From NCBI GenBank assembly GCA_002269645.1, contig NIVC01000661.1, positions 206,724 to 270,723 of the forward strand: 64,000 nt of DNA. Reading direction: 5' to 3'. This stretch comes from Macrostomum lignano. Taxonomy: Eukaryota. The notes beneath the pieces were generated by a model. The model worked only from the letters and a program-made list of their open reading frames with translations. It did not search any database and had not been told where the DNA came from. Of this stretch, positions 658 to 50,901 are shown one piece after another. Position 1 is the first letter of the stretch; each line of letters begins with the position of its first letter. A program made the position numbers and the translations under genes.

Positions 658-3371
658 TCAGCTCAAATCCCAATCCTCCCGCAAGCGCTGCGATGTCCAA
701 CAGCGCCTCCCTGCTGCTCAGCAAGCCGTTGATTACAAACAAATCGTTGTCATGGCAACGCCACGCCTCGCAACAGCGACGGGAACCTCGGAGTCGGCAG
801 CTGCATCCTCAGCCGAATCGGAGCCAGGTGCCAAGCTGCTGTACAGCATTCAGCCTGGCGGCTTCGATGTCATCTTCTGTATCGATAATCGCGAGCACTT
901 CGGGTGAGGGATTGGAATGCATCTCTCGTGTTTTAGTTAACCTTGGAGTTTCTAAAACCCTTCAGGTGTCTAAAAGCGTTCAGGTTCCAAACATCCAGGT
1001 GTCTAAAACCTTCAGGTGTCTACAACCTTCAATTGTCCAAAACCTTCAGGTGTCTACAACCTTCAATTGTCCAAAACCTTCAGGTGTCCGAAACCTTCAG
1101 GTGTCCGAAACCTTCAGGTGTCCGAAACCTTCAGGTGTCCGAAACCTTCAGGTGTCCGAAACCTTCAGGTGTCCGAAACCTTCAGGTGTCTAAACCCTTA
1201 AGTGTCTAGACCTTCAGGTGCCTAAAACCTTCAGGTGTCTAAAACCTTCAGTTGTCCAAAACCTTCAAGTGTCCGAAACCTTCAGATGTCTACAACATTC
1301 AGGTGTCTAAACCCTTAAGTGTCTAGACCTTCAGGTGTCCGAAACCTTCAGGTGTCCGAAACCTTCAGGTGTCCGAAACCTTCAGGTGTCCAAAACCTTC
1401 AGGTGTCTACAACATTCAGGTGTCTAAACCTTTAGGTGTCTAAAACCTTCAGGTGTTTAAAACCTTCAGGTGTCCGAAACCTTCAGTTGTCCAAAACCTT
1501 CAGTTGTCCAAAACCTTCAGGTGTCCGAACCTTCAGGTGCCTAAAACCTTCAGGTGTCTAAAACCTTCAAGTATCCGAAACCTTCAGGTGTCTACAACCT
1601 TCAGTTGTCCAAACCTTCAGGTGTCCGAACCTTCAGGTGCCTAAAACCTTCAGGTGTCTAAAACCTTTAAGTATCCGAAACCTTCAGGTGTCCGAAACCT
1701 TCAGGTGTCCAAAACCTTCAGGTGTCTACAACATTCAGGTGTCCAAAACCTTCAGGTGTCCGAAACCTTCAGTTGTCCAAAACCTTCAGGTGTCTAATAA
1801 CCATCAGGTGTCTAAAACTTTCAAGTCTTGGGACCTTTTTTGTTACTAATATTACGAGCGTAGCTTCCACTGATAAAGTGGCATTGTTATAGTTGTAACA
1901 AATAAGATTTACGCATAATTTTCAACCACTTCCTCAGCATGGGCAGCGTGAAGCAGATGTTACTGCCCGGCCTACTGCGCAACAATGTCAAATGCGATGT
2001 GCGTCCACTGCAGGTGTCCGACTTCCTCTGGGTGGCAAGTGTCGCTGTGAGTTTCTTTTTAGTCTGTACAATTAGTGCACTTATAATTGCAGTTGTTATT
2101 CAATTAAAATTGTTTTTTTTTCGCTTCTGCCTGCTTGCATCTACTGAAAGTAGAAAATCAACATTTTTTGCTATTTTATCTTTTTTTACTAAAACTAATC
2201 CTGCAGCCACGGGACGCGAAGCGGTGCTCAATCTGCTAGTGGAACGGAAGCGACTTGACGATCTGGCCAGCAGCATCAAGGACGGCCGGTTCAAGGAGCA
2301 GAAGTTCCGACTGCGCAGGTCCGGCATCGCCCAGCTGCTGCTTCTAGTTGAAGGCTTCGGCGGTCGTTCCGGCGGTCACGTGCGCATGCCGGAGGAGACG
2401 CTCGCCCAGGCCGTCTGCAACTCGCAGCTGATTGACGGCTGCGCTGTGAAGTACACGGACTCTGCTCAGCACACTGTGAGCTATCTCACCTTGCTGACCT
2501 GCCACCTGAGAGATCTGTACAGCGGCGGCAGCTGCTAGTCTATGACAGCATGCCGGCAACCGGAGGTGTCTCCAAGGACTCCAGACCGACTGTTTCAGCC
2601 GTGCTGCCGCTGGGCGGTCCGGGCACCGATGCTAATGCGGTGGACTTTGCCGAGTTTAATAGGGCTGCAATTAAGTCTAAGGTGAGCCGATATGTATCGA
2701 AAGTAAATTTAAAGTACCGATATGTAACGAAAGTTAATTATCGCGCCGATATGTATCGAAGGTAAATTAAAAGTACCGATATGTATCGAAAGTAATTATA
2801 GCACCGATATGTATCGAAAGTTAATTATACGCAATGATATATATTGAAAGTTAAGTATAAGTACCGATATGTATAAAAAGTCAATTTTAAGCATTAATAT
2901 TGTATCGGAAGGAATCTATCGTAAATACCGATATGTATTATAATTTTTTTAATAACCACAACACAACTTTTAAATCTCAAGCAATAAATTTTCAAATCTC
3001 CATGAACCTTTTTTAGAAACTTGTCGTTCGAGAAATGCTAGCCAAGCACCTGCTCCAAATTGGCGGCGTTACTATGGAGAAAGCGCTTGCCATTGTGCAG
3101 CAGTACCCCACTGTGCAAGCGTAAGTTTTAACCTTTCATAAAAATAATAATTGCATTCTTCTACGTACACTACTTATCTCAGTAGAAAGTTGGAAACTTT
3201 TCAGGTAGTTCATCTCGTTTATTTATTAATTTCAGACTGCTAGACGCGTACGCGGCATGCGAGACCGATGCGGAACGACGCCGCCTTTTGTCTGGCATCT
3301 GTCACGACAGGATATTTGACAAGCGGATAGGTGACTCAATTAGCAAGAGTGTCATGCTCAGCTTTAAGTAA
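658..3371 (+). CDS. MUS81: Crossover junction endonuclease MUS81, 3' portion; exons ~658-903, 1938-~2038, 2207-2681 (1-nt frameshift at ~2527), 3017-3120, 3236-3371
   Basis: Spliced translation gives [14 protein letters not shown] / [17 protein letters not shown] / [27 protein letters not shown] (ERCC4 nuclease) ... [13 protein letters not shown] / [31 protein letters not shown] (HhH) / [21 protein letters not shown]...RIGDSISK...*. GT-AG sites join in phase; the exon-2 donor and the first acceptor are approximate. Upstream exons lie outside the window. Confidence 0.93.
945..1820. repeat. Intronic minisatellite, ~17-19 bp unit aaaccttcaggtgtccg
   Basis: Direct tandem copies in a MUS81 intron. 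Confidence 0.92.
2685..2940. repeat. Degenerate ~29-bp repeat with core ccgatatgtatcga; further copies at 3470-3660
   Basis: Recurring cgatatgtatcg palindrome-like core. Confidence 0.75.
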
Positions 3372-4364: not shown

Positions 4365-5500
4365 CACTGACTGACTCTCAATCTCAGTCTATTCTCACTG
4401 ACTGACTCTCAATGTCAGTCTATTCTCACTGACTGACTCTCAATCTCAGTCTATTCTCACGATCTATTCTCACTGACTGACTATCAATCTCAGTCTATTC
4501 TCAGTGACTGACTCTCAATCTCACTCTATTCTCACTGACTGACTCTCGATCTCAGTCTATTCTCACTGACTGACTCTCAATCTCAGTCTATTCTCACTGA
4601 CTGACTCTCGATCTCAGTCTATTCTCACTGACTGACTCTCGATCTCAGTCTATTCTCACTGACTGACTCTCATCTCAGTCTATTCTCACTGACTGACTCT
4701 CGATCTCAGTCTATTCTCACTGACTGACTCTCGATCTCAGTCTATTCTCACTGACTGACTCTCGATCTCAGTCTATTCTTACTGACTGACTCTCAATCTC
4801 AGTCTATTCTCACTGACTGACTCTCGATCTCAGTCTATTCTCACTGACTGACTCTCAATCTCAGTCTATTCTCACTGACTGACTCTCAATCTCAGTCTAT
4901 TATCAGTGACTGACTTTCAATCTCAGTCTTATCTCACTGACTGACTCTCGATCTCAGTCTATTCTCACTGACTGACTCTCAATCTCAGTCTATTCTCACT
5001 GACTGACTCTCAATCTCACTATTCTCACTGACTGACTTTCAATCTCAGTCTATTCTCACTGACTGACTCTCGATCTCAGTCTATTCTCACTGACTGACTC
5101 TCGATCTCAGTCTATTATCAGTGACTGACTTTCAATCTCAGTCTATTCTCACTGACTGACTTTCAATCTCAGTCTATTCTCACTGACTGACTTTCAATCT
5201 CAGTCTATTCTCACTGACTGACTCTCGATCTCAGTCTATTCTCACTGACTGACTCTCGATCTCAGTCTATTCTCACTGACTGACTCTCAATCTCACTCTA
5301 TTCTCACGATCTATTCTCACTGACTGACTATCAACCTCAGTCTATTCTCACGATCTATTCTCACTGACTGACTCTCAATCTCAGTCTATTCTCACTGACT
5401 GACTCTCAATCTCAGTCTATTCTCACGATCTATTCTCACTGACTGACTATCAATCTCAGTCTATTCTCAGTGACTGACTCTCAATCTCACTCTATTTCTC
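4365..5500. repeat. Minisatellite, 31-bp unit ctcactgactgactctcaatctcagtctatt
   Basis: Direct tandem copies. Confidence 0.95.
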
Positions 5501-6039
5501 GTCTATTCTCACTCACTGCTCGCCCCTATTCATTTTCTCCTCCAATCTCTCATCTCTGCTTTCTCTAAACCCCTAATCTTCACCTGCAGTCCCTGCAGCT
5601 GCCCTTTAGGTATCTCGCCCGGCCGCTCCGAACCTTTCAGCCAACTCAATTTTCGTAATGGAAAACTGAGCAACTATGAAGGGCTTTCTAAGTCCATTAA
5701 CAGTCAGGTGGGTGAGTGGCAGGCAATTGAGCTAAGCAGTCTTCCACAAGCAGAAACACGGCCTATTGCTGCAGCCAGTGCCTCGCTGGCTGACCGAGCA
5801 AAACACAGATGAGGCTTTGACAAAGTAAATTTGCAGAGAAACTTTAGTAGCTGGCAGACGGCGCGACAGGAAGCAGCTCTAGTGCAGCCACCCCCGTTGG
5901 GTGCTGTTTTCGGGCTGCTCGTTCATGGACTACGAATAGAATCTGGATTAGACGTTAGCCAAAGACTGTCATTGGCCTCTTAGCCACCGGCGAATGGAGG
6001 CTGGAAACAGCTTGATTAGCAGGTGTTAATAAATGCCTC

Positions 6040-9000
6040 ATCAAGGCACAATGCTGCTCAATCTACATGCGGTCCAGAATCCGTACCATCCGAACTGCCG
6101 CTTGCTTCGCCCAGGATGCCTGTTGGTAAGCGCCGAGTGGAGTGGGGCCGCGCCATGCGCCAGCGCTCCTACCAGCTGGCGTCGGAGTCGCACCGCCAGT
6201 CGCGACGGACCGGCGAGCAGCTGCGACGCCGCCTCGTGTCGGAGGCGGTGGCCACGGACGCCGAGCTGGAGCGGCTGAGAAGGCAGCGGGCGGGGATGGA
6301 GGCTCGGCTGGACCGGTACACCAGCGAGCAGGCCCGGCACAGGTGGGTTAAGCTGAACCGGTGGCGGTTAGTACATGTAAATCTAGGCTTACATGTAGCT
6401 CAGCGGTGAAGATCTCCGAGTTCGATTCCGAAGGCTGTCACATCAAAACGTCGAATTTTGGGCTAACTAGCAATCAGCGCCCCCCGTTGGGGAGCCAAAA
6501 AATGCAGTACAAGTTTTTTTAATAAACTACATGTAGCGTCACTTTGCATTTTACCCCAGCAGTCCCTTGTAAGCCTTGACATGTCAGCAGTTCCCCCCAC
6601 AAGCCTTAACATATCAACTCCCCCCTTGACATCTCAGCAATGCCCCCATAAGCCTTGAAATCTAAAAAAATCTGTCGACCCTAATCCTAACCCTCAAGCA
6701 TTGACATTTCAGTAATTCTCACCAATAGTCATTATAGCACTACAGCATTATAGCGATTCCCTGCAAGCCTCGACATCGTAGGGATTCCCAAATGAATCTC
6801 TGAACTTCGACATGACGCTTCTTTTATTTTTTACGTGACGCTTTTTCTACCAGCGACCCCCCCGTGAGTAGCCAACAAATATTAATGTAATAAAAAGTTT
6901 TGAATAAACTACATGTAGCTTCTGACTTTAGCCTTGACATCTCAGCTATTCCCCCCGTAAGCTTTGACATCATAGCTATTCTTCCCAAGAGTCACAGCAC
7001 ACAGTTTCATGTGACGTTTTTTACATGACGCTTCTTTAATGTCTGACATGACACTTCTTTTGTCAAGGCTTTATTCAACTTTTTAATAAACTACATGTTT
7101 CCTACCTGTTTAAACTACAGCTTCTCTTTGCAATAACCTCAGCAATCCCTTGTGAGCCTTGACATCTCAGCGATGCCCCCCATAAACCTTGAAATCTGAA
7201 AAATCCCCTGTCAACCTTGAAACCCGCTAAACCCTAACCCTAAACCCAAACCTGACCTAGACCTAACCCTAACCCTAACCCTAACCCTAACCCTAACCCT
7301 AACCCTAACCCTAAAGCCTTTACATCGCAGCAATTCTTCTCCCCTAAGCCTTGACATTTTAGTGATTCCTCCCCACGAATCACAGCACTATAGCGATTCC
7401 CTCCAAGCCTTGACATCGTAACAAATTCCCAAATGAATCTTTTAACTTCGACATGACTCTTCTTCTATCAGCGCCCCCCCCCGTGGCGAGCCAACAAAGA
7501 ATGTAATAAAAAATTGAGTAAACTACATGTACTTTGAAGTAGCTTCTGACTTTTATTTTGACGTCTCAGAAACCCCCCCCCGTAATCATTTACAACTCAG
7601 TTATTCTCCGTGAGCCTTGACATCTCAGTAATTCTCTCCAGCACATGACACTTACTTCTTTGCTTGAAGTGAGCCTGACTGTTGGGGACCGCACAAGATA
7701 TCAAAGTACATGTAAATTCGGCTTCGAGCCCCGGTCGCACACCTCCAACTCCCAGATCTCAGCGCCTTCTGCACGACATGGAGCAGCAGCCCGTCGAAGT
7801 CGCCGAGATTTCCTCCGACGGCAACAACACCGGCGACGACTTGCCGACGGTCAACGAGTTCAGCGACCTCACCGACTGGGAGGCGGCCCGTCTCGCAGAG
7901 TTCGTTGCCAGGCAGCGAGAGCAGTTGGACGGCAGCAACGGCGGCGGCGGCGGCGCAGAGGAGGTGCAGATCGACGGCCTCAGTCTGGAGAAATTCCTGC
8001 GCAGCTGCGAGGCTCGCCGATCGCGCGACGGCGCCATTCGTCGTCTCTGCGAATTCGTCGACAGCTGGCGGCCGGCGCTGGGCGCCGATGCGACCGCCGC
8101 TTGGAGGTTCCGCCGGCAGCGGAGGACGCCGAAAGTGACTGATGAGGCGGCGGCGGCAGCGGCGGCTGCGCCGGCGAAGGCCAATCGAGTTCGACGCGGC
8201 GAAGTTATCGACGACGGAGCGCCAGAGGTGACGTCAGTGGCCCAGCCGGCGGCGCAGGACGCCGAAATTGGACGAATCGAGCGCAACTTTCGGGCGCTGC
8301 TGCAGGAGGCGCGCAAAGCGCGATATCTGCGCGGCCGCAATGCTGAAATTGTTGAGCGCGACCGCGAGCTCACGACCGAGGAGATTTTTAGAGCGTTCTG
8401 AACTTTTTCTTGGAACTGCAGAACTTGTGGGATTTTCGTAGAGTTTGTGGGAGTTTCTTAGAATCTGTGGGGTTTTCCTAGAAATTATGGTCCCCGACTT
8501 TCTTAAAATTAATGGGATTTTCTGGGAATTTGTAGGATTTGGAATCTGTGGGACTGTCTGTGGGACCTGGGAATTTGTAGGATTTTTTGCAATTTATGGG
8601 ACTTTTTTTTATAATTTATGGGGATTTCTTAAAATTTATTAGACTTTCTTGAATTTACGAGCGTATGAGACTTTCTTAGAATTTTTGGGATTTTCGTAGA
8701 ATTTGTGGGATTTTCTTAGAATTTCTTTGAATTTCTTGGAATTTGTGGGAATGTCTGAGATTTTTCTGGGAATTCGTGGAATTTCTAGGAATTAGTAGGG
8801 ATTTCTATCTCTGGAATTCTCAAAAACACAGACAATTGCTTTCTGCTTTGACTTCTACAAAAACTACAAGTTCTGTCGCGACCTTGCATTGTGCAATTTT
8901 TCTGATTAATTTTGCTTTGATTTTGACTCTACATTTGCCGTGTCGTTTCATACTTAAATAGGATATTTTGTTGTGAAATAAGCGCCAATCGTGTAAAAAT

Positions 9001-12000
9001 ACTGCTATTTGAATTTATTTCATTATGTTACAACATATTACTATTTTTACTACTCAATATTGGGGCAGAGCACTAAATGATACGGTTTGAAGTGTAATAA
9101 ATCTAAATATTCACAGCCAAAAATACGGGATTATATCGATAAAATTCTTACTTTCATGCTCCTAAAGATTATTTTTATTAAAATTAGAAATTTCTCTGCC
9201 TTTAAAACCCTTACAACACTACTCACCAGTGGCATTAGAAGCGCCTGAAGATTTTAATATAATTGTTTAAATTTAATTTGAATGTAAATCTAAATTAATT
9301 CGGCACAGATTTGTAGGTATCATGTTTAGTGTCATTCTACTGACAATTATTGTCATTGTACCTGACATAACTCGGGTCACAGTACTGACATAATTAGTGC
9401 AACAGTACTGACCTCCTGGCATCGAGGTGGAGATCATCAGAGGTCATCAGGCCGCGGATGACCTCGATTGGCTCGGACGGCGCGCTTCGGCTGCGGTAGC
9501 AAAGTTCATCTCAGCAGGGACTCGCAGAGGTCGGTCGGCGCAGCGCGCGACGTCGCACTGAGCGGCGGCGCGAGCGCAACCGGCGAGGGTGACCCGTTGC
9601 GCGGCCAGGCGCCTGTCGCCCCCAGTCCCTGCAACTCCAGCTATGGATCCGCCGGGTGGCGCCGGGGACCACGAGGCCAACCTTCATCTGGCCCCAGCTG
9701 TACCAGGTGGCCGCCTCAGACTCGGAACGATGAACTTCCGAACTCTGAAGGCCCCCTGGCGTCGCACCATCCTTGTCCAGCTGGCCCACGACCTACAGCT
9801 GGACTTCGTCTCGCTTCAGGAGGTTTCTATCGTGGCTGAGCTGGGGCTCCACTCTGAGGACTTTGGAGACGGCTGGAGCCTCCTGTACACGTCGGCAGAC
9901 GACCGTGGTCGGGGCGGTGTCGGCGTGCTGATCGGACCGCGCCTCCAGCAGAGCGTGCACTGCATCTCGCTGTCCCCGCGACTGATGCGGGTTGACCTGC
10001 GACTGCGCGCCCGCTGCATCCGGCTGTGCTGCGCGTATGCACCCACCGCTGCTCACCCCGAGGAGGCTCGTGCCTTCTTCGACTTCCTGGCTGGGCCATG
10101 AACCGCGTGCTCGCCGGCGGCGCTCCTGCACCCACCGAGTGGACCGTCGCGCACATCGTGCCGATCCCGAAGAAGGCAGGTACAACGCGGAAAGAAGACC
10201 ACCGCGGGATCTCGCTGATGTCCTGCACCGCGAAGCTCTTCAACCGGCTGCTGCTAGATCGCCTGCAGTTGCGCGCGGTGCTGGACCCGTACCTGCGGTA
10301 CGAGCAGAACGGATTCCGGCCGCAACGCGGTACACTGACTCAGATCCTCGCACTCCGCCGTGTCATCGAGGAGGCGCGCATCCGCCAGTCTACGCTGATC
10401 ATTGTCTTCGTAGACTTTCGAAAGGCGTTTGACTCGGTGCTGAGAGCCGCGCTTCCCTTCGTACTTCGAGCCTACCGGGTACCCCAGCAGCTAATCGACG
10501 CTGTCATGGCGCTGTATTGCGATACTGGAGCTTCTGTGGTGACGGCGGACGGCCTGTCTGACCTGTTCGACACTTCATCAAGAGTTTTGCAGGGCGACAC
10601 GCTGGCGCCGTTCCTCTTCGTGCTGCTGCTGGACTGGGTGCTTCGGACCGCACTCCCCTCTGCTGACGACGGCTTCCTGCTGCGCAGACGCATCGGTCGC
10701 CGCCACGGCGAAAAGCGCCTAATTATGCATGCAGCGTGCTTGGCTACCCCGACGACCTCGCCCTCCTGTCCTCGTCCATTAAAGGCGCCCAGCGCCAGAT
10801 CGACAGGTTGGTCGAGGGTCGTTGGTCAACACACTGAAGACCGAGGTGCTGACTGTGCCGGCCAACATCCCAGAGGACCTGACATGCCGCAGCGCAGACG
10901 GGCAGATGACCAGGTTCGCACGCTGCCAGCGGTTCACCTACCTCGGCGGTCTGGTGCCCCACGTGGAAGAGGACCTCCGGCGGCGCAGAGGACTTGCCTT
11001 GCCGGCCTTCCGTTCGATCCGGGCCGTCCTCCAGTCCGAAGCGCTGCGTGGTCGAAACCGTCCTGCTCTACAACGCCGAGACGTGGACGCTGACGGCTAC
11101 GCTGGAGCGGCAGCTGAATGGACTCGGCGCACCCACGGCTGCTCGGTGCGGCCTTTCCAGCTGACACGAGCGTCGGGACCGAGGCCCTGTACGATCGGGC
11201 CAAGCTGCAGCGCTCGTCCACCATCCTGCGCCGGCGCCGACTTCAGCTGGCGGGCCACACGTGATCAGGGCCGAGGGCTTCTGCCCCCAACCTGTTCAGG
11301 ACGTCCTGCTACTCACCCTGCAGGGCCCACTCAGGCGGGGTCAGGCCCGAACCCGTCGATACGTGGACTGCCTCCTACGCGACGTCGGGGCGCCCGACAC
11401 TGCCAGCGGGGCGGACTTCGTCCGCTCTCAGACTCTGCGGCGCGCCATCTGACGCGCCCTGCTCTGCGACTTTGCTTGCGGGGCTGCGTAAATTGTTGTT
11501 GTTGCATTACTGACATAATTAATAATTAGTGTCAACTGAACTGACATTAATAGTGTCAAAGTGCTGACATGGCTAAGTGTCAAATCGGCACTGTACTTTG
11601 ACTCTATTTTTTCCACTTGAAGTAGTCTGTTCTGCATATTTTTAATGACAATCAGCTATTAAGAAGCATAGAAAAATGTTAACTCACTGCGGGTCAGAGT
11701 GCTGCTCCATTGTCCGATTGTACACCTGGGCTGCGCACTTATAATCGCCCAGCCTTTGTGCACCTGGCTGAGAGGCAGCTGAGACTCCTGCGGGCCCAGA
11801 ATGAAGGCATTTATGAAACTGTGGTGGGCGACAGACAGGAAAGTGGGCAGCGAGAGGCTCAGGGCTTTGTAAAATGAAGCTCAAGCAGTCCAAGTCTCTG
11901 CACAGGTCAGAGCTTAGCAACCGCACAGTAACGGGGTGTGGGGGCTTGAGAGTGCGGCTTGATGATGAAAAATTTTATATAGAATTTTTTTCAAAGCTTC

Positions 12001-15000
12001 TGGGCAGACTGGAAAGGTGGACAGAATAGATCGAAAGACAGGCACACAGACAGACAGAGAGACAGACAGCCAGGCAGACACCAAGGACAGCCAGGCAGAC
12101 ACCAAAGACAGCCAGGCAGACACCAAGGACAGCCAGGCAGACACCAAAGACAGCCAGGCAGACACCAAGGACAGCCAGGCAGACACCAAGGACAGCCAGG
12201 CAGACAGACAGACAGACAGCCAGGCAGACACCAAGGACAGCCAGGAAGACACCAAGGACAGCCAGGCAGACAGACAGACAGAAAGCCAGGCAGACACCAA
12301 GGACAGCCAGACAGACAGACAGACAGACAGCCAGGCAGACACCAAGGACAGCCAGGCAGACACCAAAGACAGCCAGGCAGACACCAAGGACAGCCAGGCA
12401 GACACCAAGGACAGCCAGGCAGACAGACAGACAGACAGCCAGGCAGACACCAAGGACAGCCAGGAAGACACCAAGGACAGCCAGGCAGACAGACAGACAG
12501 ACAGCCAGGCAGACACCAAGGACAGCCAGGCAGACAGACAGACAGACAGCCAGGCAGACACCAAGGACAGCCAGGCAGCCACCCAGGCCATGCCGCTGAC
12601 CACGGAGAGCCTTCGCAAGCTGCAGAAGAAGACCTCGCAGACGATGCTCGGCGCCCAGCGCCGCGCCGAGATGGAGTCGAACCGGCTGGCGCGCGAACTC
12701 TCCGAACTGCGCGCAGTCGAAGATCGGCGCGACGTGGCGCGCAGGCGCAAATTTCGACAGGCGGAGCGGCAGCTGGCGCTGTCCGGCCTCGCCCTGTCGG
12801 ACAGTGTCATCGACGTGCCGGCCATCAGCGGCGGCCGGCCGAGGGCCGTCAGTTCAGCGCAGCGTCGACGGCAGCTGGACAGCCTGCCGGCCGGGCTCGG
12901 CGACGTCGTCGAAGCGACAACGGGTCGACGACGACGGCCGCGGCAGCGAAGGCCGCTGTCGGTGTTCGCGCCGCAGGCGGATCGGCAGCGACAGCTGATG
13001 GCGGACGAGGAGGCGGCGGCAGCGGCGGCTGCGGAGGCGGGGCAGCTGGGAAGTCACGTGAGTTGCGTTCGACCTGTTAGACCTATTGAAAATGTTAGAT
13101 AAGATTTTTCGATCAGTTAGAGACAGTTGATAAACCTGTTAGACACAGTTGTTAGATCTGTTAGACACAGTTGTTAGATCTGTTAGACACAGTTGTTAGA
13201 TCTGTTAGACACAGTTGTTAGATCTATTAGACACAGTTGTTAGATCTGTTAGACACAGTTGTTAGATCTATTAGACACAGTTGTTAGATCGATTAGACAC
13301 AGTTGTTAGATCTGTTAGACACAGTTGTTAGATCTGTTAGACACAGTTGTTAGATCTGTTAGACACAGTTGTTAGATCTGTTAGACACAGTTGTTAGATC
13401 TGTTAGACACAGTTGTTAGATCTGTTAGACACAGTTGTTAGATCTGTTAGACACAGTTATTAGATCTGTTAGACACAGTTGTTAGATCTGTTAGACACAG
13501 TTGTTAGATCTGTTAGACACAGTTGTTAGATCTATTAGACACAGTTGTTAGATCTGTTAGACACCGTTGTTAGATTTATTAGACACAGTTGTTAGATCTG
13601 TTAGACACAGTTGTTAGATCTGTTAGACACAGTTGTTAGATCTGTTAGACACAGTTGTTAGATCTATTAGACACAGTTGTTAGATCTGTTAGACACCGTT
13701 GTTAGATTTATTAGACACAGTTGTTAGATCTGTTAGACACAGTTGTTAGATCTGTTAGACACAGTTGTTAGATCTGTTAGACACCGTTGTTAGATTTATT
13801 AGACACAGTTGTTAGATCTGTTAGACACAGTTGTTAGATCTGTTAGACACAGTTGTTAGATCGATTAGACACAGTTGTTAGATCTGTTAGACACAGTTGT
13901 TAGATCTGTTAGACACAGTTGTTAGATCTGTTAGACACAGTTGTTAGATCTGTTAGACAACGTTGTTCGATCTGTTAGACACAGTTGTTAGATCTGTTAG
14001 ACACCGTTGTTAGATATATAAGAAATTATTTTTAGATTTGCTAGAGATCCACTCGCCAAAGCCTCTTGACTTACTTGACTTAGCTGCAGGGTGGTCCGTA
14101 GACACAGCGGGGAGGCGAGGGTCGCCCATTCCGCTAGCCCCTGAAGGCCCGCAGACAGGCAGAGGCGTGGGGCCGGTCAGGGTGGTCCGCCGGTCCGTCC
14201 TGCAGCGTGATCTTCCGTTGGGAAGAAACTGGCTCGTCTAGTCGCCCGAAGGAACTGGATGAGCCGTGGGATGCTGTCGGGCTGGCAAACCTCGTCAATG
14301 GACGGGTTCGGCCCGAGGTAGCGTAGCCGGTCTCTGTTAAAGAAAGGGCAGTGACAGACAAAGTGCTGAGCATCTTCATTGTCGCACTCGCAAAAGGGGC
14401 AAATTTCGCTCTCGAGGTCGCCTCGGAGGAAGCAGTGCCTGGCGAGGTAGCCATGGCCGGTGAGGGTCATGACAAGGGCTCGAATATCCTTCCGATTCTG
14501 GTTCAGAAGGATGTTTCTGAGCCTGTGAGACGGGCAAGGAACCGCGGCACGAGATTGCCGGCAGTTTTGGGTGCCCGCCCATCTGTCCCTGTGGAGGGAG
14601 TCAGCCCAGTCGTCGATCTGACGATTGATGACTGTCAAGGGCATAGGGACCAGGGGGCAGGGCCGAAGAAAGAGCCAGAGCCGCCCCTCTTGGCGAGGGT
14701 GTCTGCCAGCTCGTTCCCCGGAAACCCTGCGTGCCCTGGGATCCACTTCAGCCTGACAGTATTGCTTCTGGCCAGGAGGTTGAGCTGCCGGGCGCAGTCG
14801 GCGACTGTCCGGGAGATCGTTGTGGTGTGGCAAAGGGCCTGTAAGGCCGCTTGGCTGTCGGAGTGGATGACAATAGTCTTTCCTCTCGTAACCTTGGCGT
14901 TCAGCTCTGCAGCGCAAGAGCTGATGGCAAGGACTTCGTTCTGGAAGACTGTGGAGAGTCTACCAGTGTGCTGGGCATGCGTGGCAATTACGCGGCCGTT

Positions 15001-18000
15001 GATGATGATGCAGACCCCAAAGCCGGCGCGACCGTCTTTGATGGATCCGTCCGTGTAGCAATGGACCTCCTGGAAATTCCAGTGGTCATTGGCAGCATCC
15101 CTAGAGGGGATGGTGACCTTGTAGCGCTGAAAGAGGTTGAGAGTGCGGGGTTCGCCGTCAGATAGGACGTGGAGCCCGCCGCTGTCTCTCAAGTCCTTGA
15201 GGCAGAGGTCAGCGTGGGGCAGAAGCTTGCGCTTAGCCATGGCCCTATGGGGCTGGATTCGAATGCCAGCGTCAGCTAGACGGCGGGCAGTCTTAGCCGC
15301 TTCCCTGCGGACAAAGATGTCCAGCGGAGGAATGTTGAGGAAGGCGTTGAGGCCATCGTAGGAGCAGACGGAGGGGCGCTCATGATCGTGCGACAAGCGC
15401 GCCCTTGCGCTCTCCTGAGAGCCTCTAGACAGGTCTTTATCTGCAGGGCGCTAGCCCAGATCAGGCCGCCATACGAGATAGCGGGCCTAACCATTGCAGT
15501 GTAGATCCACCAGAGGCGCTTGGGGTGAGCCCCCAGGTGGTGCCGACAGCCCTGCGCAATTGCGCGAGGACTGCGAAGGCCTTTTTGGCTTTTGTTTGAA
15601 CGTGGGGTGACCAGTTCAGCCTGTGGTCCAGGGTAATACCCAGACATTTAGTCTGCTTGCAGAAGGGGATTTCCCTTCCGTAAAGCGTGAGCGGCCGAAT
15701 CTGCCACTTGGTCCTGCTGGTGAACATGATCGCTGCGGTCTTAGTCTCAGAGAGCCTTAAACCACAGCGGTCCGCCCATTGCTCATCAGCGTAGATGAAG
15801 TTCTGAAGAAGGTCCCTGAGGGTATCAGGGGACGGACCAGATGCCACCGCGGTGACATCGTCCGCATATCCAACTTTCAGAATGGGGTCAGGCCGAACAA
15901 CCCGGAGGAGCTCATCGATGACCATATTCCAGAGAACTGGAGACAGCACCCCACCTTGCGGGCTACCTTTGCAGACGGGGACCGTCCTCTGGTAGCCCAG
16001 CAGACTGGCGGTGGCCGTGCGATGGCTGATCATGTACATGATCCATCTGGTGAGATGTGAGTGCGTTTGCCTCTCACAAAGAGCTCTTCGGAACGCCTCA
16101 AAGAGGACGTTATCGAAGGCGCCAATGATATCCAGGAAGATCCCCAGAGCAAAGCCATTACCAAGCACGGCCTTCTCGAGTTTATCGACCAGGACGTGCA
16201 GCGCGCTTTCAGTGGAGCGACCCGCCCGAAAAGCGTGCTGGTTCTCGCTGAGAGGTTTGTTCTTCAGCTCAACAGAGAGAAGGCGCCAAAGCACCAGTCT
16301 CTCCATCAGCTTGACCAGGGAGGAGGTCAAGCTGATCGGTCTGAAGGATTTGATAGAATGGTAGTCCGAGCGGCCTGGCTTAGGGATAAAGATCACCTTT
16401 GCCTCGGTCCATGCCTGCGGGACATAACCAAGCGTGATGCATGCCCGAAGAAGGCTGCAAAGTTTGCGCAGGAAGCCTGGGCATTTAACCGCCTCTCTTA
16501 GAAGGGCCGGTACAATGCCGTCGGGTCCTGGGGCTTTGAAAGGCTTGAAGGAATTTGCCGCTCTCACAATGCGGTCCTCCGTGATGATAGAGGCAGCCAG
16601 CGCGTGACCTCCCTCCGAGTGATCCGGAGTGGTCTGGTTAGCTGGCTCGTTGGGGAAAAACGCAGTGAGCATTACATCAAGCGTTTCCCCTGGGTTGTCC
16701 GTGGACGTACCGTCGGTGCGTTTGACCGAGGAGAGCTTAGACATTTTGTCCAGCGTGAGCGCTTTCACAACTCTGGAGGTGGGGCGTGAGCCCTCTAGCT
16801 CCTCACAGTATTGTCGCCATTTTTGAGCCTTTGCATTCCTAACCTTCCTTTTAAACTCATGAATTGCTTCATGATAGGCGGTTTGGTCTGCAGGGCTCTT
16901 AGTTTTAGTTGCTCTGCGGTGGAGTCTCTTAGCCCTGCGACGGAGGTTGCCGAGCTCGGGATTCCACCACGGCGCCGATTTTTTCCCTTTATAGGCTTTT
17001 AAAGGGCAGGACGCCTCAAAGGCGGCGGTTAGCGTCTCTGTCAAAACAGTCGCGCACTCATCCGCCTCTCGGCACGACGTGATCGTGGATGGTTGGCCAG
17101 GAGACCGATGGAATTCCTTCAGGGCGAGCCCGAAGGTTTCCCAATCCGTATTTCTGGCGTTCCGTCTCCACGTAACACGAGTTGCGCTACGCGCGGCCAT
17201 TAGGTTGAAGGAGATGAACTTGTGATCCGAGAGTGAGGACACTGGAAGCACCCGCCACGCTCCAATACTCTGGTAGAGTCTGGGCGTTGCGAGCGTAGCG
17301 TCGATCACCTCCGACCACCGTCCGTTGTCAAAGGTAGGGGTGGACCCAGAGTTGCAGAACTCGAGGGTCGTAGAGGCAACGTAGGCTAGGAGGTCTTCGC
17401 CTCTCTGATTAATGCCAGTGCTGCCCCAGTGAGTGTGGTGGGCGTTGATGTCGCCGGCAACCATGAGCTCGTAGTTTTTGGCAGAGCAGAGCTCTACCAG
17501 CGTAGCGAGGGCTCTGGGGACGACCGCAGCATCACCTGGTAGGTAAACCGAGGCAATGAGGGTGGTCTTCCCAGGAAGAAGGTCCTCGGATTGGATGACG
17601 CAGATGTCCCTGTTGGACAGGTCCGATCTGAGCCACGCACTGAGCGTTTTGCTCGCAAAGATGCAAGCTCTGGGAGGCTGGTTGGCCTCGCGAGGGTAAG
17701 TATAAAAACAATTGTAGCCAGCAGGGGCGTTTTGAGGCTTACCTCTGAGAGTCCAGGGTTCCTGGACGAGGATGAGCCCCGGCTTGTCGAGCTCGGCGTA
17801 ACGCATAAGGTTGACCGAGGCTGCGACGCAGTGCTGCAGATTAATCTGCAGGCAATGGATTCCCTGGTTGCTGATCATTATCACGCAGTTGGGGAATCGT
17901 TGAGCAGGTCATCCTCCTCCTTTTCAGTGGTGGGTGACCCGCAGACCTCCATGGGAGTTTCAGCGTCCTCAGCAGTTAGGGTGGCTGTGGAGTCCTCCGC

Positions 18001-20050
18001 GGACGTGAGCCCAGCGTGGACGTTACCGTCGCCTCCCCTGCGTGCTTCGGTGCTGTCACTGCCCGTCCCCTCTGCCTCGTCGGTCAGGTCGATGCGGGTG
18101 GCGCCAGCCTCCTGGTGAGTCACAGACTCGAACCAGTCGGTCGGAGCCTCCCCGCTTAGAGTCTGGCCTTCTGGCTGTTGGGGTGGAGCGCGAGAAGCGC
18201 GGGCCCGCTCACGATGCGCACGAAGGTTCTTGGCCTGGTCCAGCGCGCGCTGGATCAGGCCGGACCTCCGGGTGCTCCTGGCGGGTCTGCGATTGCGATT
18301 TCCGGTTTCAGCAGCGCGAACTGCCTTACCGGGCATAGATCTGTTAGACACAGTTGTTAGATCTGTTAGACACAGTTGTTAGATCTGTTAGACAACGTTG
18401 TTCGATCTGTTAGACACAGTTGTTAGATCTGTTAGACACCGTTGTTAGATATATAAGAAATTATTTTTAGATTTGCTAGAGATCCACTCGCCAAAGCCTC
18501 AGATGTGAATGAATTCATGGCTCATAAAAATGCAGCCAGTATTACGTAATCAAAACCTCCACTGCAACCCTCGCTGGGATCAAGTGGTCCCAGGGCTCTG
18601 ACGGCAGTGGCTGCTTGACAAACTGTTATTGGGAAAAATCCAATTGGCTATTTTGGTTTCGATGGGAAAAAACTCCAAGAGGAGCCCCGAGAGTTTGAGC
18701 TCGTCCTGGCAGCAAAGGTCATAAAATTTGCATGAAAACAAATCATAATTTGATAGCCTAAAATTGGGCGCCAGAGTCTAAAATTGGGCGCCAGAGTCTA
18801 AAATTGGGCGCCACAGAGTCTAAAATTGGGTTCCAGAGTCTAAAATTGGGCGCCACTGTCTAAAATCGGGCGCCAGAGTCTAAAATTGGGCGCCACAGAG
18901 TCTAAAATTGGGCGCCACAGAGTCTAAAATTGGGTTCCAGAGTCTAGAATTGGGCGCCAGAGTCTAAAATTGGGCGCCACAGAGTCTAAAAATGGGCGCC
19001 ACAGAGTCTAAAAATGGGTTCCAGAGTCTAAAGTTGGGCGCCACAGAGTCTAAAATTGGGTTCCAGAGTCTAAAATTGGGTTCCAGAGTCTAAAATTGGG
19101 CGCCATAGTCTAAAATTGGGCGCCAGAGTCTAAAATTGGGTTCCAGAGTCTAAAATTGGGCGCCAGAGTCTAAAATTGGGCGCCAGAGTCTAAAATTGGG
19201 CGCCACAGAGTCTAAAAATGGGTTCCAGAGTCTAAAGTTGGGCGCCACAGAGTCTAAAGTTGGGCGCCACAGAGTCTAAAATTGGGCGCCACAGAGTCTA
19301 AAATTGGGCGCCACAGAGTCTAAAATTGGGCGCCACAGAGTCTAAAATTGGGCGCCACTGAATCTAAAATTGGGCGCCAGAGTCTAAAATTGGGCGCCAG
19401 AGTCTAAAATTGGGCGCCAGAGTCTAAAATTGGGCGCCACAGAGTCTAAAATTGGGTTCCAGAGTCTAAAATTGGGCGCCACTGTCTAAAATCGGGCGCC
19501 ACTGTCGCAAATTAGGCGCAAGTGTCTAAACTTTGGCGCCACTCTCTAAAATCGGGCGCCACAGTGTCTTTAACTGGCCATGCTCCTCTCCTTCCAGAAG
19601 CAGCAACAGCAACAGCAGAAGCAGCAGCCGCAGCCGGCTCCCAGCTGCCAGTTTGCTGGCTCCGACGGCTCCCCCTGCGGCAGGTTCCCCTGCTGCCTGC
19701 CCGCCAGCTACAGCTTCATCAGCAGCAAGCGGGAGATGCTGCAGCTATACGACCTGCTGCTCAGCCAGCTGCCGGAACACCGGCGCCCGAAGAGCGGCGC
19801 TGACTCAGCCGCCGGCTCGGACCTCAGCTCGATGATCTCCGACGCCGAGTACGTAATCGAGGCGCAGAAGAAGGTGTCCTCACTGGACCCGGTTGAACGC
19901 GCCCGGCTGCTCAAGATGGCGTCGGAGCAGTGGCGCCGCAGGCACTCCGGGCAGATGCCGCAGCCCAGGGAGACCCGGTATGGCAAGCCCTACCCGATGC
20001 GGAGGGTGATAAAGCCGATCTCTTCATCCAGCTGCTCATTTCTGAACTGA
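6040..20050 (+). CDS. Uncharacterised multi-exon protein with coiled-coil and Ala/Arg-rich segments; exons ~6040-6342, 7756-~8390, possible 11697-~11870, ~12008-13057, 19598-20050
   Basis: GC-rich open frames. Junctions 6342/7756 (phase 2) and 13057/19598 (phase 0) are canonical GT-AG and in frame; stop at 20048-20050. The donor after ~8390 and the start codon are unresolved, so this could be two genes. No family recognised. Confidence 0.55.
6470..7700. repeat. Degenerate long-period (~380-620 bp) duplication with internal gccttgacat subrepeats
   Basis: The cagcg(c/a)ccccccg...agccaa...taataaa...aactacatgta block recurs at ~6476, ~6852 and ~7469. Confidence 0.75.
7262..7313 (-). repeat. Interstitial telomeric repeat, about 8 copies of TTAGGG
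   Basis: Perfect (CCCTAA)n run on the + strand, with degenerate copies just upstream (7228-7250). Confidence 0.9.
9413..11504 (+). mobile_element. Degenerate RTE-type non-LTR retrotransposon, 5'-truncated, with a large internal deletion between endonuclease and RT
   Basis: APE motifs LGTMNFRTL, SLQEV, GVGVLI and AYAPT (9589-10095). RT motifs IVPIPKK, RGISLMS, EQNGFR, VDFRKAFDSV, LQGDTLAPFLF, YPDD (frameshifted) and FTYLG. Ends in (TTG)n; flanked by near-identical cagtactgac (9403-9412) and cattactgac (11505-11514). Confidence 0.88.
12070..12580 (+). repeat. Frame-preserving 21/24-nt repeat encoding (DTKDSQA)/(DRQTDSQA)
   Basis: The unit variants read are multiples of 3; the frame stays open into unique coding sequence. 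Confidence 0.85.
13135..14015. repeat. Intronic minisatellite, 22-bp unit tagatctgttagacacagttgt
   Basis: Direct tandem copies; partly duplicated at 18336-18450. Confidence 0.95.
13901..14065. repeat. Left copy of the 165-bp direct duplication flanking the LINE (right copy 18336-18500)
   Basis: Identical on reading, including the variant unit acaacgttgttcgatc and the unique tail gatatataagaaattatttttagatttgctagagatccactcgccaaagcctc. Confidence 0.92.
14066..18335 (-). mobile_element. Non-LTR retrotransposon with APE-RT-RNase H-Cys/His ORF2 (I group, LOA/Lian-like), 5'-truncated in ORF1
   Basis: ORF1 remnant 18335-17881, then TGA-TA-ATG. ORF2 carries QINLQHC, QEPW, GDINAHH, SDH, KAPGPDG, QHAFR, PQGGVLSP, YADD; RNase H YTDGS, VFQNE, SDSQAAL, WIPGH; C-terminal LTGHG...CPFC..HFVCHC. 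Short TAAGTCAAG-type tail at 14066-14083; 165-bp direct repeats on both sides. Clade assignment is by recalled motif similarity. Confidence 0.93.
14177..17878 (-). CDS. LINE ORF2 polyprotein (endonuclease, reverse transcriptase, RNase H) broken by three 1-nt frameshifts at ~15523, ~15361 and ~14655
   Basis: ORF track segments 15461..17884, 15276..15647, 14635..15396 and 14177..14917 join into one polyprotein when one C (minus strand) is restored in each of three C-runs. Confidence 0.88.
18770..19560. repeat. Intronic minisatellite, 20/22-bp unit gagtctaaaattgggcgcca(ca)
   Basis: Direct tandem copies ending just before the acceptor at 19597. Confidence 0.95.
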
Positions 20051-45948: not shown

Positions 45949-47895
45949 ATGCGAGAAGCTCCACCGCTGCCGCTACTGATTGCACTGCTAGCATTTGCAG
46001 CTGGCAGTCAAACTGAATCAGGCGCAGTGCCGCCCTTTCAATGCCCCGGCACCGGCTGGCATGTCTACAGTGATTGGCACGAGACCACCTGCCTGAAGTT
46101 GATGCCAAATCCGATGCTTTTAGACGAGGCGTTGCGTACGTGTTTCGAGTCAAGATCTCGGCTACTATCGTTTCAGCACAAGCACTCCAAGGTACAGTTT
46201 GTTAACGATCTTATCATCGCGGCGAATCCCAGCGAGAGTCACCGCGGTCAATGGCTTTTCGATCCACTGGGAATCGACCAGAGGCTCGTGAAGCAGCCGC
46301 ACCACCCAGAGGCTCGCTGGCTGCTGCTCCGTCCCAACGTTGACTCGTCGAAAATCGAGTTGCTGGCAAACACCACCGCCGTGCCGAGAAATTTCGTCTG
46401 CGAGGCGCCAGCGCGACCGGCGCAGCAGCGGCCCCAGATCGAGCGCGAACCAGAGGATGCCTTTGTTACGGAAGACCTGCTAGTTCCAACAACCGGCACC
46501 AAGTCTTCACCGTTTGTCGTCACATTTAATTGTCAGGCATTCGGCTTGCCGAAGCCAACAGTCTCGTGGACTCTTGTCAGCGACGAGGACCAACTGGAGT
46601 TCTCTTTGCAGCCAATCAATGCCACTGTTGTTCACAGCCCGAGACTGCCGATCGACCAGCCTGGTGTCAACTTGCGGAGACTTCTGTTCTATAATCTTCA
46701 GCGCGACTGCAAGCGCGAGCTCTGCCCGACTGACGGCATCCAGGAGAGCAGCCAACTGATCGTTGTCAACGCACAGCTGCTGCTGGCAGACAGCCACAAG
46801 AGGCCGCCTAGAGTTGCCTGCATCGCTGCAAACAGTTACGGCTCGGTGCTGAGCAGGGAGGCGCAGCTGATGGCCACTCGGCTGGGCCACTTTTCCAGCC
46901 AGTCCGTTGAGGTGTTCGCCACCGTTGGCCAGCCGGTCGTGACTTCAAATGCCATCGCCGTGAAGCCGGACGCTGCGTCAATTGAGTGCTTTCTCACGAT
47001 CGATGGTGAAAAGGCCCAGGATCGAGTCGACCTGATCCCGATGGAGGCGGTGAACCAGGCCACTCGCGGCGGTCTGCAACTAAGCCGAGCCAAGTTCGAC
47101 TTCATCGTCGATTCCTCGTGGAGTCAGGGCGAAGAGCGATATCTGTGTCAAGTCAGCTTGCCTAACGGCCGTCTGGGTCACGTGACTCGAGAGCGAACGC
47201 TCCTCATCAACTACAAGCCGTGCCAGCCTCCCGAGTGCAACCTGGCCTTCAAGCCCGTGTCCGTGGTACCCGGCTACCCTGCTGTGCTTTCAATGAACCC
47301 CTACAGCAGTCAGCTCATCCGCCACGGGGACAGCTTCCTGCTCGAGTGCCCCTGCACCGGCAAGCGGCATCCGGCTGAAGAGCTGCTCGTAGAATGGAAA
47401 CTCAACAATGGTGCCAATATTGAGGCTTTGGCACTGCCAACTTTGCCCCAAGGCTCCGTTCTGCTTTTGTCTGGGGCGGACAGCCTTCGGCACAGCGGCC
47501 TGTACGCCTGCCGCTGCCACCGAGGTGCGACCGCCTCCGACTGGCGCTCCGTACAAGTCAATGTCCTGCCATCGCTGACGCCGAGTCAGTGGACTCGTGA
47601 ACCGCTGCTCCGAGTTCGGGCTGGAAAGAATTTTAGTCTCAATTGCAAAGTGGACTCCGTCAAGGACATTGTGTCAGTGTCCGTCCAGCCTCTAAGAAAC
47701 ACTCGACCGATAGTGAGATCGGAACGGATCCAGCTGAACCAGCCCAGCGCTGGCCGATTCAGACTGAGCATCTTCAACGTTACTGTGGAGGACGCGGGTC
47801 TGCTCGGTTGCCGAGTTGCTGCGAACTACAGTGCCGGCTACCTAGACGTGAACACCTACTATGTGGCGCTGATGGTGGAGGCTGGTATCTCCTAA
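45949..47895 (+). CDS. Contactin-like cell-surface or secreted protein: signal peptide, C-type lectin domain, about four Ig domains (648 aa ORF)
   Basis: N-terminal hydrophobic stretch PLLIALLAFAAG. CTL signature CPGTGW...TCLKL...C...LLS...W...NFVCE. Ig motifs VTFNCQAFGLPKPTVSW...CIAANSYG, YLCQV, LECPC..VEWK..HSGLYACRC and FSLNCKV...EDAGLLGCRV. CTL followed by Ig is the known architecture of invertebrate contactins. Confidence 0.8.
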   Translation: MREAPPLPLLIALLAFAAGSQTESGAVPPFQCPGTGWHVYSDWHETTCLKLMPNPMLLDEALRTCFESRSRLLSFQHKHSKVQFVNDLIIAANPSESHRGQWLFDPLGIDQRLVKQPHHPEARWLLLRPNVDSSKIELLANTTAVPRNFVCEAPARPAQQRPQIEREPEDAFVTEDLLVPTTGTKSSPFVVTFNCQAFGLPKPTVSWTLVSDEDQLEFSLQPINATVVHSPRLPIDQPGVNLRRLLFYNLQRDCKRELCPTDGIQESSQLIVVNAQLLLADSHKRPPRVACIAANSYGSVLSREAQLMATRLGHFSSQSVEVFATVGQPVVTSNAIAVKPDAASIECFLTIDGEKAQDRVDLIPMEAVNQATRGGLQLSRAKFDFIVDSSWSQGEERYLCQVSLPNGRLGHVTRERTLLINYKPCQPPECNLAFKPVSVVPGYPAVLSMNPYSSQLIRHGDSFLLECPCTGKRHPAEELLVEWKLNNGANIEALALPTLPQGSVLLLSGADSLRHSGLYACRCHRGATASDWRSVQVNVLPSLTPSQWTREPLLRVRAGKNFSLNCKVDSVKDIVSVSVQPLRNTRPIVRSERIQLNQPSAGRFRLSIFNVTVEDAGLLGCRVAANYSAGYLDVNTYYVALMVEAGIS

Positions 47896-49612: not shown

Positions 49613-50901
49613 GGGAGCACGACGTTTGCCCGCCGACGTTTGCCCGCCGACGTTTGCCTGTCGGAAGTTTGCCCGCCGACCTTTGCCCGCCGACCTTTGC
49701 CCGCCGACCTTTGCCCGCCGACCCCTTTGCCCGCCGACGTTTGCCCGCCGACGTTTGCCCGCCGACGTTTGTCGGTCGAAGATTGCCCGCCGAAGTTTGC
49801 CCACCGACGTTTGCCCGCCGAAGTTTGCCCGCCGACGTTTGCCCGCCGAAGTTTGCCCGCCGAAGTTTGCCCGCCGACGTTTGCCCGCCGAAGTTTGCCC
49901 GCCGACGTTTGCCCGCCGACGTTTGCCCGCCGACGTTTGCCCGCCGACGTTTGCCCGCCGACGTTTGCCCGCCGGAAGTTTGCCCGCCGAGGTTTGTCTG
50001 CCGACGTTTGCCCACCGACATTTGCCCGCCGACGTTTGCCCGCCGACGTTTGCCCGCCGACGTTTGCCCGCCGACGTTTGCCCGCCGACGTTTGCCCGCT
50101 GACATTTGCCCGCGGACAATATTTCGCTCCATATTTGGCTGAGTGACATTTCCCCCTAAAGGAGGTCGATTCTCATTGTGTTTTCAACTCCTTTTCATTT
50201 AGCCGCATGATTAGAATCATGAACGGAAACATGATGCGAAATAAAATTGTGAAGATTAAATTTACTTGACGGTAATAACATAAAATTATTAGCTGTACCG
50301 TTTCACATTTTTACGTTTATTTGTGTAGCGGCTGCACTCTCGTTTTTCGAAGATCGAAGGTGAGCACCTCTCGTGGAAAAAATCTTGGATAAATGGATCT
50401 ACTTGACAATGTGTAATGCATGCGCATACAGAAATATATGCGACTGAACTGAAATAAATAACAATCACTGTAATTTTTGAAGAGCTTGTTGTGTAGCTGG
50501 ACTGGAATGGAATCCAAGTGGAATGGAATGGAATGGAATCTAAGTAAAAATGTAAAAATTCATTTTTCGTACACGAAGCTATACACAGAAAGATTGATTG
50601 AGGGCAAACGTCGGCGGGCAAACGTCGGCGGGCAAACGTCGGCGGGCAAACGTCGGCGGGCAAACGTCGGCGGGCAAACGTCGGCGGGCAAACGTCGGCG
50701 GGCAAACTTCGGCGGGCAAACTTCGGCGGGCAAACGTCGGCAGACAAACGTCGGCGGGCAAACGTCGGCAGACAAACGTCGGTGGGCAAACTTCGGCGGG
50801 CAAACTTCGGCGGGCAAACTTCGGCGGGCAAACTTCGGCGGGCAAACTTCGGCGGGCAAACGTCGGCGGGCAAAATTCCAGCGGGCAAATTTCGTAGACC
50901 C
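49613..50901. mobile_element. Non-autonomous foldback/Mutator-like DNA transposon with tandem-repeat inverted arms and a 9-bp TSD
   Basis: TSD catcgcgcc at 49604-49612 and 50902-50910. Termini gggagcacgacgtttgcccg and the reverse complement gggtctacgaaatttgcccg. Arms are built of 14-bp gtttgcccgccgac (49620-50110) and its reverse complement (50603-50890); the core is AT-rich and non-coding. Confidence 0.85.

Follow-up and report, generated by a model that had tools for sequence, protein, structure and literature searches.

The stretch of DNA analysed here (64,000 bp; hereafter the window, with positions counted from its first base) comes from Macrostomum lignano (NCBI GenBank assembly GCA_002269645.1, contig NIVC01000661.1, positions 206,724 to 270,723). 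In it a 5'-truncated long interspersed element (LINE), at 220,789-225,058 of the contig, lies on the minus strand between two copies of a 165-bp direct repeat, at the edge of a 22-bp minisatellite (Table 1). A preliminary description of this DNA had claimed that identical direct repeats abut both ends of the LINE, and this is what we find: the two copies agree at 165 of 165 bases, self-comparison of the window extends the match by 0 bases on either side, and the repeat ends coincide with the ends of the element, whose 4,270 bp occur once in the window (blastn). Each copy is composed of the final 115 bp (5.2 units) of the minisatellite followed by 50 bp of non-repeat DNA (14016-14065 in the left copy); the unique DNA announced in the preliminary description is present in both copies but measures 50 bp rather than the ~55 bp given there. 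The diagnostic variant unit noted at the same time, GATCTGTTAGACAACGTTGTTC, is unit 39 of 41, unique inside the array, and recurs only in the right-hand copy, and the unique portion of the repeat (50-60 bp) has just two sites in the window, one per copy. Chance cannot explain a repeat of this kind: for the unique 50 bp by themselves, a random match has a probability of ~4^-50.

The unit-by-unit listing places the left copy in perfect 22-bp register with 790 bp of upstream array, so this copy is native to the locus, while the right copy leads straight on into unique right-flank DNA at 18501. Joining 14065 to 18501, which removes the LINE and one repeat copy, gives a simple continuous sequence, and because the left copy continues the array and the right copy continues the unique flank, a simple empty site is reconstituted. 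The 3' junction of the element (14065/14066) reads ...AAGCCTC/TTGACTTAC..., with a boundary uncertainty of ~1 nt since a G may belong to the TAAGTCAAG tail, and the 5' junction (18335/18336) reads ...CCGGGCA/TAGATCTG..., with an uncertainty of at least 1 nt, the A of the parental ATG being common to element and target. The duplicated target is therefore ~161-165 bp long. The shared A is microhomology of the sort usual at the 5' junction of 5'-truncated LINE copies.

The preliminary description had also called the element a LINE with an APE-type endonuclease, a reverse transcriptase (RT) and an RNase H, and Pfam finds all three domains. The endonuclease is APE-type and N-terminal (Exo_endo_phos_2, 5.5e-20; Exo_endo_phos, 6.6e-08; amino acids (aa) 13-224 of an 807-aa open reading frame (ORF)), the RT lies downstream of it (RVT_1, 2.1e-30, aa 500-750), and the RNase H and then the Cys/His motif CPFCECDNEDAQHFVCHCP, whose Cys and His columns are nearly invariant in an alignment of relatives, are both C-terminal to the RT, in frames shifted by 1-nt deletions. 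On this domain set, rather than by placement in a named clade (I, Nimb, Tad1, LOA, Ingi), we provisionally assign the element to the RNase H-bearing I-like group. Measured against P0001, an intact relative (62% identity), ORF2 is full-length (~1,233 codons) with three frame changes, all of them 1-nt deletions in short homopolymer runs (~15520-15525, 15358-15364 and 14653-14657), which may be true mutations or long-read consensus errors. The M. lignano gene model P0030, which derives from another copy, changes frame in the same ORF2 regions, and the frame changes in both could be either deletions common to copies of the family or recurrent long-read consensus errors.

Upstream of ORF2, 450 nt encode the C-terminal 150 aa of ORF1, the full version of which is known in P0030 and in L001, a full-length relative with 62% amino-acid identity from another sequencing run. 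The remnant has a weak, sub-threshold similarity to DUF4780 (E = 0.023), and two other relatives (L002 and L004) carry DUF4780 ORF1s. P0030 contains a full ORF1, 99-100% identical, that reads ...PRQTADP-MPGKAVRAAE..., and the copy in the window begins at the second base of an internal ATG codon of ORF1 as read there; the truncation point at 18335 and the start of the remnant (MPGKAVRAAE) align with approximately aa 406 of the 525-aa ORF1 of L001. The 5' truncation that had been proposed is borne out in this way: compared with a full-length M. lignano copy, the element begins partway through ORF1. At the other end the LINE finishes in a short tandem repeat, (TAAGTCAAG)2, at 14066-14083, and since L001 ends in the same CTGCAGCTAAGTCAA (5948-5962), position 14066 is the true 3' terminus of the family, to within one G. 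Inverted repeats were looked for without success, and the element has neither long terminal repeats nor terminal inverted repeats.

The nearest named matches of the LINE protein are unclassified M. lignano models followed by insect and fungal elements at 24-27% identity. In the protein database the family is represented only by chimeric UniRef gene models: P0030, annotated as "Peptidase_S8 domain-containing protein", joins a subtilase N-terminus to ORF1 and ORF2 pieces of the same LINE family, and P0036 and P0040 are similar chimeric models with a related LINE family. An exact-protein look-up returned no match for the ORFs of the LINE, no close relative was present in the metagenome contigs scanned, and no further copy of the family was found in the window (blastn; 3'-terminus pattern) or in the fetched loci. 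By sequence identity this is a young LINE: over the ORF1 remnant and the C-terminus of ORF2 it matches P0030 at 99-100%, and the flanking repeats show 0 differences in 165 bp.

Table 1. Features of the LINE insertion and its flanks (window coordinates; a dot marks features without an assigned strand).
Feature	Position	Strand	Basis
22-bp minisatellite, consensus GATCTGTTAGACACAGTTGTTA	13111..14015	.	Tandem Repeats Finder (TRF), 41.1 copies; last 5.2 units inside left repeat
Left repeat copy, adjoins LINE 3' end	13901..14065	.	identity to 18336-18500; register with array
TTTTAG acceptor-like hexamer, 30 bp before insertion point	14030..14035, again 18465-18470	+	read directly
5'-truncated I-like LINE, 4,270 bp	14066..18335	-	Pfam domains; tblastn against P0001 and P0030; single copy in window
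3' untranslated region, end ...CCCTGCAGC(TAAGTCAAG)(TAAGTCAA[G])	14066..14176	-	conserved terminus, CTGCAGCTAAGTCAA also ends L001
ORF2 C-terminal region, Cys/His motif CPFCECDNEDAQHFVCHCP; stop codon 14177-14179	14177..14657	-	100% identical to C-terminal 146 aa of P0030
ORF2 RNase H region, frame other than that of the RT	14653..15364	-	Pfam RNase_H 8.1e-15; alignment to P0001
ORF2 N-terminal part, APE and RT, 805 aa from ATG at 17878	15464..17878	-	Pfam; 62% identical to P0001
Frame change 1, 1-nt deletion in CCCC/AA run	15520..15525	-	comparison with P0001
ORF1 C-terminal remnant PGKAVRAAE...DSPTA, stop 17881-17883	17884..18335	-	P0030 ORF1; L001 ORF1 aa 406-453
Right repeat copy, adjoins truncated LINE 5' end	18336..18500	.	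identity to left copy; continues into flank

The most economical reading of repeats that abut both LINE ends is the one first proposed, a target-site duplication (TSD). Read along the element, the locus runs from the flank through 165 bp, the truncated LINE, its tail and the second 165 bp to the remaining array, as target-primed reverse transcription (TPRT) predicts. That the duplication was really generated by the insertion appears to us very probable, and we consider it likely, with less assurance, that the locus records a genuine, recent germline TPRT insertion of a 5'-truncated I-like LINE with an unusually long TSD (~161-165 bp) whose distant break was sporadic. We infer the following order of events. 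The endonuclease would have nicked the plus strand of the window at 5'-AAGCCTC^AGATGTG-3', between 14065 and the base now at 18501, and the freed 3'-OH would have primed synthesis of complementary DNA (cDNA) on the RNA 3' end ...(UAAGUCAAG)2. Reverse transcription would have halted after 4.27 kb, within ORF1; the minus strand would have been broken ~165 nt away, between 13900 and 13901 and 115 bp into the 22-bp minisatellite, and the cDNA end joined at this second break with at least 1 nt of microhomology, whereupon filling-in of two 165-nt 3' overhangs would have duplicated the target. The distant second break was most likely sporadic, caused by an unrelated nick, by a repair or replication intermediate, or by late or off-site cleavage, and is probably not a property of the LINE family or of the minisatellite. 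A nick motif shared by the two breaks was also considered, AGATGTG or AGATCTG occurring on the plus strand beside both boundaries, but its polarity is opposite relative to the nicked strands, and we dismiss it as a coincidence with the array consensus.

Three points weigh against an insertion with a sporadic long TSD. The family is represented here by one copy, and the term sporadic thus leans on a prior drawn from relatives of 27-41% identity and from other LINE clades. The TSD itself is read from the assembled sequence of the filled site. Finally, the assembly was made from noisy PacBio continuous long reads (CLR) and the LINE carries the three homopolymer deletions described above, so base-level and structural accuracy at the locus is not guaranteed.

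The preliminary description tied very long TSDs mainly to elements with a restriction-like endonuclease, a view that is incomplete in omitting the precedents among APE-type elements, human L1 and the zebrafish L2-clade element ZfL2-2 (PMC5223499, PMC2912911, PMC2666801). Among L1 insertions recovered in HeLa cells TSDs longer than 100 bp make up less than 10% of events, whereas in cells deficient in nucleotide excision repair they are the majority and some exceed 1 kb, and it has been proposed that a distant unrelated nick, or an end arising in replication or repair, primes the second strand in such cases (PMC5223499). Extremely long L1 TSDs go particularly with 5'-truncated copies (PMC2912911), and in wild-type DT40 cells one of 25 ZfL2-2 insertions had a TSD of 1,228 bp (PMC2666801). 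Because these precedents exist, a single TSD of 165 bp on a 5'-truncated APE-type LINE falls within known, rare behaviour.

For comparison, relatives with the same domains and 27-41% amino-acid identity were gathered from public contigs, and a TSD was measured where a simple-repeat tail marks the 3' end and matching sequence flanks the 5' end; the closest relative, L001, is not among them, its contig stopping short of the 5' flank. Its length was 13 bp in L002 and 14 bp in L005, both with (TAA)n tails, 11 bp in L019 (tail (TCAA)n), 14 bp in L036 (tail (CAAA)n), 11 bp in L069 (tail (GAA)n) and 14 bp in L083 (A-rich tail). None of the six therefore has a long TSD (range 11-14 bp), and the copy in the window is a more than 10-fold outlier, the comparison being one with distant relatives outside its own family. 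The full-length (TAA)n element of L005 (3080-12292) also holds a second LINE (4553-6427), nested or in tandem, with its (TTA)n end placed upstream of an ORF1 that is 5'-truncated.

Could long TSDs be regular for this LINE family, or for LINE integration in M. lignano as a whole, the second break falling 100-200 nt off (about one nucleosome) or flaps and nicks being only weakly processed? In favour of this, the TSD is more than 10 times the 11-14 bp of the relatives, and a host- or family-wide shift is mechanistically possible, in that the repair background can shift most L1 TSDs in human cells above 100 bp (PMC5223499). It would, however, be a rule derived from one copy, as is the suggestion in the preliminary description that this family may nick the second strand far away; relatives alike in domains and type of tail make short TSDs, and long TSDs are the rare exception in systems with many scored events (PMC2666801, PMC5223499, PMC2912911). 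We regard regularly long TSDs as unlikely.

The same low standing is given to the minisatellite as the cause of the long duplication, through array breakage or slippage that placed the second break or the priming there. The second-strand break does lie inside the array, 115 bp from its edge, and tandem arrays are generally prone to replication problems. TRF reports 41 tandem arrays, mostly with periods of 14-31 bp, that cover ~37% of the window, and a 165-bp interval touches an array about half the time by chance, so the adjacency carries little weight; with arrays over 37% of the window, the position of the LINE beside a minisatellite is not special. Units, their order and their register agree between the two copies, as does the unique 50 bp, and there is thus no sign of out-of-register pairing. 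Single strands of the duplicated segment fold no better than shuffled controls (z = -1.2 and -1.9), and a hairpin or cruciform as the cause of a break in the array was accordingly set aside. For these same reasons, the ordered unique 50 bp, the abundance of arrays and the ordinary folding, the suggestion in the preliminary description that second-strand synthesis was primed by the minisatellite finds no support. The array density of the window is well above the 15% that simple and tandem repeats make up genome-wide in M. lignano (PMC5730564).

Somewhat less probable again is an assembly artefact, in which filled and empty alleles, or chimeric reads, were joined in the consensus and the second 165-bp copy resulted from that join. 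The M. lignano assembly (Mlig_3_7) represents a line that carries additional chromosome copies; PacBio CLR reads were assembled with Canu, Pilon served for polishing, and the product is known to be redundant and difficult (PMC5730564). Two paralogous copies of the region are present in it, on NIVC01002837.1 and, inverted, elsewhere on NIVC01000661.1, and the three 1-nt homopolymer deletions in the LINE resemble consensus errors. A haplotype switch alone, however, cannot bring the LINE 5' end and the array together, and their junction looks natural, with truncation inside ORF1 and 1 nt of microhomology; nor would a misjoin respect the two ends of the element, by which the duplication is exactly bounded.

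Quite improbable, in our judgement, is a history in which the repeat is no TSD at all, either because the LINE struck the joint of an earlier tandem 165-bp duplication or because a later template switch or gene conversion copied the segment beside the LINE 5' end. Local duplications do occur in minisatellite regions, and gene conversion could also give exact identity; but the insertion would have had to fall exactly at an existing joint, or a second event to match both LINE ends, which is much less economical than one TPRT event, and the duplicated block spans the boundary between array and unique DNA, unlike the product of array slippage. Transduction, by which the 165 bp would be flanking DNA brought along from a source locus, has in its favour only that LINEs can carry such DNA, and we rejected it as next to impossible: the 5' route is closed to a copy truncated inside ORF1, the 3'-side (left) copy continues the resident 790-bp array in register and is hence native, and in L001 the shared terminus is followed by other flanking DNA.

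The preliminary description had drawn attention to a ttttag acceptor-like site beside the insertion, and the hexamer is indeed there, the right-hand repeat copy restoring the pre-insertion sequence downstream of the LINE. Upstream of it lies an exon-like, GC-rich ORF of 157 codons (12587-13057, plus strand) with a donor GTGAGT at 13058. A 21-bp array (12047-12587) that comes before this ORF in the same frame would be translated into a repetitive peptide. Since the protein database offers no homologue of the upstream ORF and gene records yielded no annotated gene at the locus, TTTTAG can be called no more than a possible splice acceptor.

Elsewhere in the window, a single-exon immunoglobulin (Ig)-domain gene at 45949-47895 (648 aa) corresponds to an annotated M. 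lignano protein of the BOX15_Mlig008232 group and has three paralogous copies. Its paralogues lie in L006 (NIVC01002837.1) and, inverted and ~200 kb away, in L007 (NIVC01000661.1, 35,763-57,805), and their flanks are ~94-99.6% identical to the window, with arrays of differing length. The paralogous positions that could carry the empty site fall outside both L006 and L007, 27-32 kb from the Ig-domain gene, and are expected near 118-124 kb of NIVC01002837.1 and near 75-80 kb of NIVC01000661.1. Dating the insertion by the split between paralogues was tried and abandoned, the identity between the window and L006 ranging from ~94% to 99.6% with array content and being too variable to set against 0 differences in 165 bp. 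A second, decayed and unrelated LINE occupies 9410-11507 on the plus strand, with an APE N-terminal fragment (ORF 9589-10101), an RVT_1 ORF (10026-11093, 6.2e-19) and a 3' end reading ...AAATTGTTGTTGTTGCA. It sits within a degenerate ~23-bp repeat (TACTGACATAATTAGTG...) on both sides, and its TSD is for this reason indistinguishable from the periodicity of the array. An ORF at 1939-2538 (plus strand) encodes an ERCC4 nuclease domain (Pfam PF02732, 2.9e-24) and is probably an exon of a MUS81/XPF-family gene, and a GC-rich, exon-like ORF of 207 codons at 7778-8401 (plus strand) is absent from the gene index. A telomere-like tract, (AACCCT)14, lies interstitially at 7230-7314, in a non-telomeric region, and two 14-bp arrays, (CGACGTTTGCCCGC)35 at 49620-50117 and (GGGCAAACGTCGGC)19 at 50602-50874, are mutual reverse complements ~480 bp apart that together form a large inverted repeat.

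Cutting and priming of the second strand is the least understood step of LINE integration, and to our knowledge natural germline insertions with very long TSDs have rarely been documented outside cell-culture assays. The insertion in the window most likely adds one natural case to an outcome of LINE integration that is rare but known. It would mean that a distant second nick also arises, and its product persists, in a non-vertebrate germline and with an RNase H-bearing I-like element, and that a single LINE insertion is able to double a 165-bp piece of the host genome, in this case one with a possible splice acceptor in it. Taken on its own the event is a curiosity that existing models accommodate. 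If long TSDs were instead the rule in this family, it would offer a natural system for studies of second-strand cleavage, and were they family- or host-wide, this family would be the first of APE type in which long TSDs are systematic, the counterpart, with another endonuclease, of the rotifer element R9.

R9 of bdelloid rotifers is described as an element with a restriction-like endonuclease that is specific for the 28S ribosomal RNA (rRNA) gene and makes the same 126-bp TSD at every copy. The LINE described here resembles it as a non-LTR retrotransposon flanked by a TSD of more than 100 bp and differs in its endonuclease, which is APE-type and N-terminal whereas that of R9 is restriction-like and C-terminal to the RT, and in its target, which is the edge of a minisatellite and neither an rRNA gene nor a known RNA gene of another kind, Rfam having no match in the entire window. 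With the Drosophila I factor and I-like LINEs it shares the order APE, RT, RNase H and Cys/His, a separate ORF1 and a short tandem-repeat tail. The I factor and its kin have simple-repeat 3' tails such as (TAA)n; the tails of the I-like relatives found here include (TAA)n, (TCAA)n, (CAAA)n and (GAA)n, whereas the tail unit of this LINE is the 9-mer TAAGTCAAG. The features by which the I-like group is recognised, APE, RT, RNase H with Cys/His, ORF1 and a tandem-repeat 3' end, are all present; the exception is the TSD of ~10-15 bp (11-14 bp in the relatives, 165 bp in the window), which is a usual rather than a strictly defining feature of the group. The closest likeness is to the sporadic long-TSD events of L1, reportedly described by Gilbert et al. 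and Symer et al. and summarised in PMC5223499 and PMC2912911, and of ZfL2-2 (PMC2666801). Those elements are engineered, in cell culture, and the copy in the window is a fixed or segregating one in a flatworm germline; it is RNase H-bearing and I-like, with a simple-repeat tail instead of poly(A). In both settings an APE-type element has its intact 3' end at the first nick and a truncated 5' end joined with few-nt microhomology at most, the second break lies far from the first, and a duplication of more than 100 bp is bounded by these two ends, as sporadic long-TSD TPRT would leave it.

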